Of a DNA stretch of 64,000 bases, positions 25,422-59,107 are shown piece by piece. Under the pieces are notes generated by a model. It made no database searches and was not told where the DNA came from. It saw nothing but the letters and a program-made list of their open reading frames with translations. The number at the start of each line of letters is the position of its first letter. Position 1 is the stretch's first letter. Both the position numbers and the translations under genes were made by a program. Source of the DNA: Hyaloraphidium curvatum SAG 235-1 (lineage: Eukaryota > Fungi > Monoblepharomycota); the NCBI GenBank assembly GCA_025558095.1, contig JAIVFI010000013.1:1-64000 (forward strand), in the 5' to 3' direction.

Positions 25422-26835
25422 ATGGCTCCCTCCACCCCCGCCCTCTCGGAGCTCTCCATCGGCCCCGCCGACTACCCCTCCGAGGACGACGCCGAGATGT
25501 CGCACGCGTGGAAGGGCAAAGAGCGCGCGCGGATCGATTCCGCCGTGTGCATCGAGGAGGTGGACCGGTGGAGCCTCGGGGAGGGAGAGGGGGAGACGGA
25601 CCCCGCGAGGGCGTTCCCCGTCGAGGTACGCGCTCTCCGCTCCCCGATTTTCCCTCGGGGAAGACGCTAAAATGATGTTCCCGGGCAGGTGTTCCTGCAC
25701 GTGCTCTCGTTCCTGCCCACTCCGCGCGATCTCGCGCCGTGCTTCCGAGCATCGAGGGCGTGGAAGGCCGCGGCGGAGGACAACGGCCTGTGGACGCGGA
25801 TGACCGAGGCGCTGTGGTCGACCAAGGCGTACGTGCCGGACAGGTACCCCGTTGCGCCGCGGTGCTCGGCTGTGCGCCAGCTGATCACGTGAGTGCACCT
25901 CGCTCTGGGTACAGGTTCAGGCAGATCCTCTCGCGGGGCCGGGCCAAGGACGCCTACAGGCTCAGCGTCAGGGACAGCCGGCGCAACTGCATCACCAAGG
26001 AGGAGCTGTGCATGTTCGAGTGGCAGTGGCGGTTCAAGGAGGACGCGGTGCGTTCCTGCAGGATTCGGATGATCGCCCGGCACGCGGCTGATCAGGGTTG
26101 AACCTTCGTGAACGCACAGGGCGAGCACTTCACCGACGAGGACCCGTGGTGGAACGGCCTCCCGCCCCGCGTGCGCATCTTCAACCCCGACGGCTCCATG
26201 AGCGGCACGTTCGCCCGCCCCGACGTCAGCTGGCGCTTCGTCGTGGGTTCCCCCCTCTCGTTCCCACCCCGCACTTGCTTACCGCTCGCCTTACGGGCGA
26301 AGAACAACGCCGAAGGCCGCCGCGGCCGCCCCGGGCGCTTCGTCCGCGTGGGCCCCTACCCGGCCTCGGTGCTCTCGCGGCACTCCAACTGGGGATGGTA
26401 TATGCAATCCGCGTGGACCGTGGCTGCGGCGTTCCCGCTGCCCAAGAAGGTGAAAGCTTCGGGGCTCGAGGGCCGAGGGCGCGGGGCTGATCATTGGGTT
26501 TGCAGGGGACCGACCCCGAGCTGGAGGACAGGAACCTGGCCGTGACCACCGAGACCCAGCGGTTCGAGGTGCTGTGCTGTAAGCTGCCGTGTTCCTCCGC
26601 CCGTCGGTTGGGTTGCTCACTGCCCCGCGCGCCAGACAACTCGGGGCTCGACTACGGCGACGACGAGGTGATGGATCGCCGCGGGTTCGAGCGCGCCAGC
26701 GCGCGAGCGGGGTGGAACATCCGGCTGCTCAGGCGGAGCTGGATCGAGAGCGACTCGGAGGAGGAGGAGGAGGAGGACGACGAAGAGGAGGAGGACGGGG
26801 AATGGAGCGCGCACTCGGGCGAGGCGTCGCGGTGA
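25422..26835 (+). CDS. F-box protein with acidic tail (multi-exon)
   Basis: F-box AFPVE-VFLHVLSFLPTPRDLAPCFRASRAWKAAAEDNGLW; then WQWRFK, FNPDGS, GPYP, NWGW; poly-Glu/Asp tail. Confidence 0.8.
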
Positions 26836-26961
26836 GGGAGTTGGCTCGTGGGTACCGGACTATTGGGTGTTCTCGCAACGTTCTCGGTTCGACAACAGTT
26901 TTGGATTTCGCAAGGCATTTGCCTACTCTTCGGAGCACCAAGTCCAAAGTCCAAAGCCAGC

Positions 26962-27046
26962 GACGCGGACTCCAGCAGACATCCATCAGGCGCGCCCTTC
27001 CCTCTTGGATTCCGGGCGCCCTTCATCGTCCGCCTCCGTCCACGTC
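26962..27046 (-). promoter_or_regulatory. SECIS element (eukaryotic, type 2-like) in the selenoprotein 3' UTR
   Basis: Minus strand: GACGUGGAC..GGCGGAC-G-AUGAA-GGGCGCCC-GG-AA-UCC-AAGAG-GGA-A-GGGCGCGCC-UGAU-GGAU-GUCUGCU..GUCCGCGUC. It has the AUGA/GA core, two paired helices and an apical AA 11 nt after the core UGA. Confidence 0.88.
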
Positions 27047-27076
27047 CATCCTCCTTGCTCCACAAGGCCGGGCCGC

Positions 27077-27719
27077 CTAGCAGCCCTTGGCCAGGGCGCC
27101 CTCGACGGCCGACACGGCCTCCTCGTCCGAGGGGAACCTGTTCTTCCCCTCCTTCTCCTTCTCCATGCCCGACCAGACCACCGTGGCTGTTTCCCCAAGC
27201 CAACAAAACAAAGGCACCACGAACAGGGAGAGAATGAGCCCCGGTCGGTCCGCGCGCGACGCCGCGCTGCCGCCCACCGTTGCACGCCCCCCTCTCCAGC
27301 GACACCTCGAACGAGTGGAACCGCGGCCGCTCCCTGTTCACTGCGACGCGCGCGCCGGGCCAGCGGCGCACCACGGCGTCGCGGACCTTGTCGGCGGCGC
27401 GCGAGAAGGCGCCTCAGGAGTTGCTAAACAGGGGGTGCCATGGGGAATACGGAGAGGCGTTAAACGGGCGCCTAGAAGAGGGCGGCGGGGATTCGCACCA
27501 CCGCTCGATGTGCAGCGACCAGTCCGGCCCCGCGACCGCCTTCTCCGCGAGCGGCGCGGCGCCCTCCGAACCCGCGAGCGGCGCGGGCCCCCCGAACCGC
27601 GGCAGCAGATCCAGCCCGAGCCGCGGCGAAGCCACAAGAAACACAAGGAGCAGCAGCGGCAGCACCACCGCGAGCCGGACGCGCGGCATGGCGCTGCCGG
27701 GGGCAGGGGTCTTGTTCAT
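27077..27719 (-). CDS. SELENOH: Selenoprotein H-like (Rdx family) protein with CxxU; exons 27719-27499, 27423-27278, 27186-27077; Sec TGA 27416-27414
   Basis: Spliced: ..LHIERCNSUGAFSRAADKVRDAVVRRWPGARVAVNRERPRFHSFEVSLERGACNATVVWSGMEKEKEGKNRFPSDEEAVSAVEGALAKGC* (158 aa). Matches the SelH pattern IEHCxxU..VN..PR..SFEV..W(T/S)G..FP on both sides of the TGA; SECIS downstream. Confidence 0.88.
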
Positions 27720-27893
27720 CGGCCTTCGCGGGGAAGGCGAGGCGGTTTCGTCGTCGCACCCAGCGTCGCTCCCATCCCTGATCCCGCCCGTGGAAAACTG
27801 GCATAGCTAGAACGGTTTCTCTCTTCCAATGCGGTACAAGAAGCTCCTCCATCTCCGCACCCCGGTTCCCGCCCTGCCTCCCTCCCGCCGATG

Positions 27894-28946
27894 CTAAACC
27901 TCCATCCACACGACCCCGGGCAACGACCTCCACACCTTCCCCTCCTCCTCGGCTTTGGCCTCCCTCGCCCTCCACTTCGGCAGCACCACCCTGATCCTCC
28001 GCAGCCCGTACCCCGTGAGCTGACCCGCAAGCTCCCCCAACCTGTCCGCGGGCACACAGAGCGTCGGGTTGGCCATCTCCAGCTCCCTCAGCCTCGGCGG
28101 CGCGTCCCCGAGCCCCAGCAGATCCGCCGTCGGGCAGTCCCTCAATATGAGCCTCTCGAGGTGCTCGTGCCGCAGCGCGAGGCCCAGATCCACGTCGCGG
28201 ATCCGCTCCGAGCGCACCTCCAGGCTCTCAAGCCGCAGCCCCGGCAGCGAGACGATCTTGCTCAGCGCGTTGAACTGGTTCCCCGTCGCCGCGTGCCGCA
28301 GCTTGCCCGCCAGCGCGGGGTACTTCCTCAGGTCCTCGTGGTACTCGGATAGCAGCGCCCAGGACCGCAGCCCCGGCGCCTGCTCGAGCACGCGGAGGGT
28401 CGGTGGCGCGCGGGCGAAGCCGTCCAGGTACAGCGACACGTGCTCCACGCTCGGCGGGACCGAGTGCAGGCCCGAGGTGAAGAACTGCGCGGCGTCGGAC
28501 ATGAGGTCCATGTCGATCCGCTTCAGGGAGTCGGAGGAGCGCGAGGCGGCGGCGAGCGCGTTCCAGACCAGGGCGGTGGAGGCGTAGGACGACGAGAAAA
28601 ACTCGAGGTGGCGGACGTGCGGCATCACACCTGCGAGGAAAGCACTGGTCGCGTCCTCGGGGTGCCCCAGATACGTGAGCGCGAGCCTCCTGATGTGCTT
28701 CGAAAAGGCGGCCATCCGGGGGTCGGCGACCATCTTGCCGGGGTCCGCGAAGCTGTTGAGCTCAAAGTGGCGGTACAGCTCCGGCGCGCCGAGGTCGAAG
28801 CAGCGGCGGCTGGCGGTCATGAGCGCGACCAGGGTGCGGCGGTCCCACGCGGCGGCGAGGGTCGCCATGACGTGCAGCAGCAGCTCGTACGGCAGCACCG
28901 GGCCGTCGGTCGCGGTGTCCGCGTCGTCGATAATAGTGTCGCTCAT
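27894..28946 (-). CDS. F-box/LRR-like protein, intronless
   Basis: LPYELLLHVM..LMTASRRCFDLG followed by LxxLxL repeats; paralog of 46181-47334. Confidence 0.75.
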   Translation of the reverse strand: MSDTIIDDADTATDGPVLPYELLLHVMATLAAAWDRRTLVALMTASRRCFDLGAPELYRHFELNSFADPGKMVADPRMAAFSKHIRRLALTYLGHPEDATSAFLAGVMPHVRHLEFFSSSYASTALVWNALAAASRSSDSLKRIDMDLMSDAAQFFTSGLHSVPPSVEHVSLYLDGFARAPPTLRVLEQAPGLRSWALLSEYHEDLRKYPALAGKLRHAATGNQFNALSKIVSLPGLRLESLEVRSERIRDVDLGLALRHEHLERLILRDCPTADLLGLGDAPPRLRELEMANPTLCVPADRLGELAGQLTGYGLRRIRVVLPKWRAREAKAEEEGKVWRSLPGVVWMEV

Positions 28947-58784: not shown

Positions 58785-59107
58785 TTCGGGAACTGCGGCG
58801 GGTCGCCGGCCCGCAATTCTGGCCCGTGCGGGGCACGCCCTGCGGGTCGGACGGCCGCCCCGGTGCGAATGCAATGCAGAGACGAGCTTGGCAGGCCACC
58901 TGAGCTGCAATTCGTGCGGGGAGCGCGGCGGCACTGTGGCGGTTCCGGCTTGAGATCGGGCGGGGCGAGGCGCAGCGGCGACAATGGCTGCGGCTCCTCA
59001 ACGGTCCCCCGCGTCATCACCACTCAAACCAAAGGAAAGTATTGGCACCGAAAAGTCATGTAGACGAATCAGAAATCCCCGTTTTGCCCAATCCTACATT
59101 TCCCCGT

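Follow-up and report, generated by a model that had tools for sequence, protein, structure and literature searches.

We conclude with considerable confidence that the hairpin at positions 26962-27046, on the minus strand of the DNA analysed here (a stretch of 64,000 nucleotides, referred to below as the window), is a genuine and ordinary eukaryotic type-II SECIS, and that it lies in the 3' UTR of a SelenoH-like selenoprotein gene of Hyaloraphidium curvatum, an early-branching fungus of the Monoblepharidomycota. It is very probably an addition to a known class and no novel type of element. Reading the hairpin as a SECIS was the proposal of an earlier note made from the letters of the DNA, and it is borne out both by the hairpin itself and by its surroundings. 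Firstly, the hairpin has an AUGA/GA quartet, a spacing of 11 nt to an unpaired AA, a type-II mini-stem and a helix I. Secondly, it begins 30 nt past the UAG (with its AUGA 50 nt past it) of a transcribed minus-strand gene of three exons that contains an in-frame UGA in a CxxU motif, and the genome encodes Sec machinery. The coordinates of all features are collected in Table 1.

Table 1. Features of the hairpin, of its host gene and of related loci (window coordinates unless stated otherwise)
Feature	Positions	Strand	Basis
Whole SECIS, type II, including extended helix I	26962..27046	-	sequence, MFE, match to the model built on the L005 SECIS
Lower stem, 5' arm GACGUGGAC	27038..27046	-	pairs with 26970-26962 in MFE
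Lower stem, 3' arm GUCCGCGUC	26962..26970	-	MFE and flank duplex
Symmetric GGA/GGA loop between lower stem and helix I		-	MFE
Helix I, 5' arm GGCGGAC, plus G27027 in MFE	27027..27034	-	pairs with 26981-26974, three G.U
Helix I, 3' arm U GUCUGCU	26974..26981	-	MFE
Core AUGA, 5' half of G.A quartet	27023..27026	-	sequence; unpaired opposite GA in MFE
UGAU, 3' half of quartet (G26987, A26986)	26985..26988	-	sequence
Helix II, 5' strand A GGGCGCCC	27014..27022	-	9 bp with 26988-26997, bulged G26991
Helix II, 3' strand GGGCGC G CC U	26988..26997	-	MFE
Unpaired apical AA, 11 nt past AUGA	27010..27011	-	sequence
Apical mini-stem UCC/GGG with AAGA loop, type II	27000..27009	-	MFE
Exon 1	27499..27719	-	ATG 27719 (public model: ATG 27689); translation; contig end exactly at 27499
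Intron 1, 75 nt, GTGCGA..TTTAG, splits Cys codon TG|C	27424..27498	-	contigs stop at both borders
Exon 2, C-N-S-U then Rdx-like core ..HSFEV..	27278..27423	-	translation; contig continuous over 27278-27424
In-frame UGA, predicted to be read as Sec	27414..27416	-	NS*G context identical in canonical SelenoH gene
Intron 2, 91 nt, GT..AG	27187..27277	-	contig joint, CT..AC on plus strand
Exon 3, coding part, UAG 27079-27077	27077..27186	-	translation; match to P0001 C-terminus
Last coding exon of convergent F-box gene	26636..26835	+	joint 26578/26636; ORF end, stop 26835
Canonical SelenoH gene (L006)	L006 1612-2209; G000:C22 ~279.6-280.3 kb	-	own SECIS C22:279582-279646

Architecture and strand of the hairpin

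Unconstrained folding of 101 nt returned an MFE structure with this same architecture, at -49.1 kcal/mol (z -4.56), a value that none of 200 dinucleotide shuffles equalled. The parts that the earlier note had named were recovered one within the other. The bases of the quartet, AUGA at 27026-27023 followed by A27022 and opposed to UGAU at 26988-26985 on the minus strand, are exactly as it gave them; the helix I that it wrote as GGCGGAC/GUCUGCU is formed by 27034-27028 with 26980-26974; the helix II that it drew with a single bulge has 9 bp and a bulged G26991 in the MFE fold; and the mini-stem that it placed behind the apical AA is formed there by UCC (27009-27007) with GGG (27002-27000). Helix II consists of the pairs A27022-U26988, G27021-C26989 and G27020-C26990, the bulged G26991, and six G-C/C-G pairs of 27019-27014 with 26992-26997, above which G27013 and G27012 are unpaired and directly precede A27011 and A27010. 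Between AUGAN and AA the SECISearch pattern has a range of 10-13 nt, and the spacing of 10 nt found here falls within it. Similarly, the quartet is flanked by the A27022-U26988 pair, the 9 bp of helix II with their one bulge compare with about 9-13 bp before the unpaired apical A, and helix I measures 7-8 bp (27034-27027 with 26981-26974) before it is prolonged by a 9-bp stem. No pair of helix I or helix II is broken in the MFE fold.

The fold depends on the strand. The plus-strand RNA of the hairpin reaches only -34.0 kcal/mol, which is 15 kcal/mol worse than the minus strand (z -3.22 against its shuffles), and this difference arises because of the G.U pairs in the hairpin. The asymmetry speaks for selection having acted on the RNA of the minus strand.

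The additional 9-bp stem below helix I, which had been listed as a separate feature, is real but not special. The duplex of the flanks has an energy of -35.7 kcal/mol, compared with -26.2 +/- 3.9 kcal/mol in shuffles (z -2.45; 1.4% of shuffles are as good), and it extends helix I in the same way as is seen in the SECIS of SelW and SelH. Indeed, the flank extensions of these two elements of the same genome are even longer (SelH SECIS z -3.6, SelW SECIS z -4.0); three others have none, and the lower stem at locus L005 is no better than chance. We take the lower stem to be a long helix I of a kind that recurs in this genome, not a distinct module, and as an extension of helix I it would stabilise the SECIS.

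The host gene, its transcripts and its family

Exon 1 of the host gene ends with ..HIER followed by TG, the first bases of a Cys codon, and exon 2 opens with C AAC TCC TGA GGC, so that the protein reads ..ERCNSUGAFS..; the part encoded by exon 3 ends with ..ALAKGC. The GC3 of exon 1 is 0.90, that of the 45 codons past the UGA is 0.98 and that of exon 3 is 1.00, compared with 0.72-0.73 in the introns, 0.61 in the 3' UTR and 0.90-0.91 in nearby Pfam-supported genes. Values of 0.98-1.00 past the UGA fit translation running through it. By analogy with what is established for eukaryotes, SBP2 would bind the AUGA/GA kink-turn quartet and recruit eEFSec and Sec-tRNA(Sec), and the UGA at 27416-27414, located ~296 nt upstream of the AUGA on the mature mRNA, would be decoded as selenocysteine, after which translation would stop at the UAG at 27079-27077. 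It is from this analogy that we infer both SBP2 binding and actual Sec insertion at the H. curvatum element.

A word search retrieved a public NCBI/JGI protein of H. curvatum, P0001 (DFJ74DRAFT_705645, 118 aa), that is 100% identical. Its model joins ..HIERW straight to ERPRFHSFEV.., and this over-long intron 1 removes the UGA together with the CxxU motif. The model is contradicted by the transcriptome, because a contig runs unbroken over 27278-27424. When P0001 was used to search the genome of H. curvatum, this locus alone was found; the SelenoH-like gene is single-copy.

The RNA data come from a single public run that contains the stretch and behaves as a transcriptome, and its contigs are unstranded. 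One contig covers 26504-26578, skips a plus-strand GT..AG intron (26579-26635), continues over 26636-27186, including the whole SECIS without any difference, skips 27187-27277, continues over 27278-27424 and ends there. Another ends exactly at 27499, and 27425-27498 has no contig cover. Thus, splicing of intron 2 is shown, and splicing of intron 1 is supported indirectly, by the contig breaks at both of its borders and by the match of the junction to that of the canonical SelenoH gene described below. Intron 1 is itself in frame and stop-free; if it were retained, the UGA would stay in frame and CNSU would become SNSU. The contig that contains exon 1 runs on into an upstream gene of the same strand (27499-28000 and beyond), a 407-aa ORF that ends at 27894 and has no Pfam match, and this continuity reflects either close gene spacing or read-through transcription.

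The SECIS is within transcribed sequence, where the unstranded cover could also come from the transcript of the convergent gene, which carries an F-box-like Pfam match upstream of its last exon (E 2.9e-9). The minus-strand transcript presumably extends beyond 26962. The gap between the convergent genes, put at ~240 bp in the earlier note, measures 241 nt from stop to stop (26835 to 27077). The antisense overlap by the F-box 3' UTR that the same note suggested is borne out only in part: the convergent transcripts do overlap somewhere within 26636-27186, because one contig bears spliced introns of both strands, and the overlap may take in the SECIS. An overlap of this kind might be taken to mean that the structure serves mainly in 3'-end formation or in sense-antisense regulation of the convergent genes and that its likeness to a SECIS is incidental, and it would agree with this that the plus-strand RNA, too, folds better than its shuffles. 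However, owing to the G.U pairs the minus strand folds better by 15 kcal/mol, and the AUGA/AA/GA geometry would be left unexplained; furthermore, hairpins are not known as definers of fungal mRNA 3' ends. We consider this explanation extremely improbable and retain the SECIS.

The strongest evidence on the family of the protein comes from within the genome, from the canonical SelenoH gene compared further below. A hallmark of the Rdx/SelenoH proteins is Cys-x-x-Sec at the start of the thioredoxin-like core, and they share a conserved tGxFE(I/V) stretch (PMC10650576). The studied protein has C-N-S-U at the corresponding place, given removal of intron 1 as modelled, and ..FHSFEV.. in the part encoded by exon 2, with H where the conserved stretch has G. 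What sets SelenoH apart is a basic, nuclear N-terminal region that carries an RKRK / AT-hook motif (PMC10650576). Such an N-terminus is absent from the studied protein, in which this region is instead hydrophobic and signal-peptide-like (hydropathy 3.2 over LAVVLPLLLLVFLVA). We file the gene as a divergent SelenoH-like Rdx paralogue and not as a SelenoH orthologue; we use "SelenoH-like" because the basic nuclear N-terminus is absent. The nearest neighbours of the exon 2 piece in ESM features are Rdx (PF10262) clusters (0.87), which we treat as a lead only.

Searches by sequence similarity, made with the separate exon pieces and with the public models, found no orthologue. No Pfam family, Rdx included, matched any of the three exon pieces, P0001 or the public model of the canonical SelenoH gene (P0002), and a six-frame scan of the genome with Pfam Rdx matched SelW and another locus, not this gene. 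A phmmer search with the 45-aa exon 2 piece gave 0 matches among 1.84 billion representatives, and against the PDB the same piece gave only noise. Word searches of large protein sets, in which the queries were partly genomic open frames and the length window was widened, returned only the mis-spliced models of H. curvatum itself. Similarly, a metagenome scan with P0001 gave no match and the ESM Atlas gave no usable match for the C-terminal half. No orthologue or second copy emerged from these searches to supply phylogenetic covariation for the SECIS.

The missing orthologues would be compatible with a relic, that is, with a decaying SelenoH duplicate that is still transcribed but has lost translation past the UGA, or its function. 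The protein is also very divergent from its canonical paralogue, and mean depth is lower in the contig with exon 1 than in that with exons 2-3, although these depths are not comparable. On the other hand, the frame is open and has no frameshift, GC3 past the UGA is equal to or above that of bona fide genes, both introns have kept canonical sites, and the SECIS has kept all the pairs of helix I and helix II. Weighing these points, we regard a relic as very unlikely and the SECIS as probably functional.

Sec machinery, chance level and covariance models

The genome of H. curvatum contains a tRNA-Sec (78.2 bits) with anticodon TCA (UCA), a SepSecS match (199+64+27 bits), SelD (169.8 bits) with an in-frame TGA, and a weak PSTK-like match. 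UGA serves as a normal stop codon as well and ends the SelW and SelH genes; since the codon doubles as a stop, a recoding signal is needed.

Other selenoprotein loci were observed in the same genome. A SelW-like gene (L005 1494-2000, minus strand; G000:C41 ~19.4-19.9 kb) has its UGA in ..LVGVK-U-G.., has no Cys at the CxxU position, and encodes a protein that ends with ..AVEAALAKKRGA. A deiodinase-like frame with ..GSHS-U-PPF.. (L003 1033-1564, plus strand; G000:C3 ~1.123 Mb) is associated with a SECIS of 32.8 bits, just below the Rfam cut-off. A SelW gene with ..VYCGAU|GY.. (L008 1392-1851, plus strand; G000:C43 ~206.9-207.3 kb) has an intron immediately past the UGA, and its SECIS has a lower stem of >25 bp and no Rfam SECIS_1 match in the genome search.

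How often the motif arises by chance was estimated with a home-made SECISearch-style pattern (ATGAN, 10-13 nt, AA, an apical part, the complementary strand, NGAN and a 7-bp helix I). It matched two sites on both strands of the window (128 kb), the studied hairpin and one with its AUGA at 59059 on the minus strand. Dinucleotide shuffles predict 0.235 sites per window, and 22% of the shuffles have at least one; at this rate, in sequence of 68% GC, the motif alone is weak evidence. The second match (58995-59085, minus strand) has a fold z of -0.21, no better than shuffles, and was dismissed as a chance match; it sits ~45 nt behind the TGA stop of a low-complexity ORF. What makes the studied hairpin non-random is its position behind a gene with a UGA, as the pattern would fall at most ~300 nt behind such a gene, and on the right strand, with a chance of about 5e-4.

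The hairpin did not match the Rfam models. No SECIS was found in the whole window at the gathering score (35 bits for SECIS_1), and SECIS_1 searched against 451 bases at E<=10 gave no match to the hairpin. Across the genome SECIS_1 marks five sites with scores from 36 down to 22 bits, two of them at only about 22 bits; four of the five lie behind the deiodinase-like SHS-U-PPF, SelK-like, SelW-like and SelenoH frames, and the other is L002. The model reaches its cut-off in one of the seven SECIS examined in this genome and misses the hand-verified SECIS of SelW (with CGAU). Recognition by Rfam SECIS_1 is a diagnostic and not a defining property of a SECIS.

A covariance-model search had been proposed as a check of the hairpin; besides SECIS_1, which was silent, models from the same genome were applied. 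The models applied to the studied element were built without it, from the single L005 SECIS, from four seeds and from six seeds; they were bootstrapped from a single sequence because a MAFFT alignment of the other six SECIS placed the 3' GA wrongly. The single-sequence L005 model scores the studied element at 27.8 bits (E 4.6e-6), which is its best non-self match in 171 kb, and gives other true SECIS lower scores of 10-18 bits. The four-seed model, which is low-powered and over-specific, gives 14.9 bits (E 0.44), and the true SelK SECIS scores no better. With six seeds the element is the top match of the window at 16.6 bits (E 0.079), and this model, also low-powered and over-specific, re-finds only its own seeds genome-wide.

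The silence of SECIS_1, the shuffle rate and the existence of a second, meaningless match would all agree with a GC-rich hairpin that has acquired AUGA, AA and GA by chance, in which case the UGA would be an ordinary stop of a peptide of ~76 residues. This view does not account for the rarity of the pattern in this position and on this strand, nor for a fold that is far better than its shuffles and strand-asymmetric. Moreover, the coding-type GC3 persists past the UGA, the splicing of intron 2, also located past the UGA, keeps the reading frame, and ERCNSUG is common to the canonical SelenoH gene. A chance hairpin is for these reasons highly improbable, and we keep to the interpretation as a SECIS.

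Comparison with known systems

Fungi were long believed to be free of selenoproteins, a view that was overturned by Mariotti et al. (bioRxiv 10.1101/314781), who reported SelenoH in fungi that use Sec, with Gonapodya as the exception in having a fragment. They could assign a SECIS to only five of the 16 selenoprotein genes from fungi, and raised the question of what shape fungal SECIS have. Amses et al. placed Sec use in 11 genomes of early-diverging fungi (PMC9457484). Our literature search found no description of selenoprotein genes or SECIS of H. curvatum. The studied element and the six other SECIS of this fungus have the canonical shape, yet most of them are invisible to, or below the threshold of, the Rfam model, which points less to an unusual kind of SECIS in fungi than to insensitivity of the model where sequence is very GC-rich. 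In addition, because the public models P0001 and P0002 both splice out the Sec codon, the redox-active site is missing from the databases.

The first relative to be compared is the canonical SelenoH gene of H. curvatum (L006), which we take to be SelenoH by its likeness to the mammalian protein. Its product has a Lys/Ala-rich N-terminus containing KRGRK, followed by ..VILERC|NSUGTYRG.., ..KPRRGAFNFIV.. and ..VWDGLTKGPPRSDKFPD.., and its public model (P0002; DFJ74DRAFT_708778, 144 aa) splices out the Sec codon in the same manner as P0001. Both genes encode ERCNSUG and have an intron inside the Cys codon at the same place; across the donor of exon 1 they agree in 15 bases (TCGAGCGGTG|GTGCG). They also share an FEV-type strand, a ..VW.G.. 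strand and a ..(R/K)FP(S/D).. helix start, are of similar size, and have the SECIS close behind the stop. P0001 and P0002 are colinear over their C-terminal 48 residues, with 27% identity (E 0.013); when the exons are compared one at a time, the protein similarity to the canonical SelenoH does not by itself reach significance. The two genes differ in the position of intron 2 and in their N-termini, which is KRK/KRGRK-rich and AT-hook-like in P0002, whereas that of the studied protein is hydrophobic and resembles a signal peptide or anchor. The SelenoH family is known as nucleolar, and for such a family it is unusual to include a paralogue, derived from SelenoH, whose N-terminus resembles a signal peptide. 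It is conceivable, though on balance we think it unlikely, that the gene founds a lineage of SelenoH-derived Rdx proteins of the secretory pathway (with a signal peptide or anchor), so far confined to Hyaloraphidium, and that its SECIS lies within the antisense overlap with the F-box mRNA, where Sec insertion could be modulated by the duplex.

Among SECIS, the nearest relative found is that of the SelW-like gene L005 (G000:C41:19432-19502). The two elements have AUGAAGGG..GGAA..CGCCUGAU in common, as well as the order of parts in which 3 bp, a G bulge and the remainder of helix II (6 bp in the studied element, 7 in L005) are followed by the As and a mini-stem. The likeness continues in their genes, both of which encode a protein end ..AVE(A/G)ALAK.. 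and have a UAG stop, then a 3' UTR beginning with GCGGCC. By contrast, the sequence of helix I differs and three pairs of helix II are swapped; all modelled pairs form and these three are compensatory, which with two sequences constitutes no significant test.

Finally, the studied element agrees with eukaryotic type II SECIS (RF00031 SECIS_1; SECISearch) in having AUGA opposite GA with an A-U pair by the quartet, a 9-bp helix II with one bulge which, together with two unpaired Gs, puts the AA 11 nt past the AUGA, an apical mini-stem, a helix I below the internal loop, and a location in the 3' UTR. It departs from them in that only 1-2 nt separate helix I from the AUGA, that AA takes the place of AAA, that it is very GC-rich and below detection by Rfam, and that helix I is prolonged by 9 bp. 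The six other SECIS of the genome likewise have 1-2 nt from helix I to the AUGA, with AAA 12-14 nt past the AUGA (11-13 nt past AUGAN), and because they share it the short 5' loop of the studied SECIS is the local norm.
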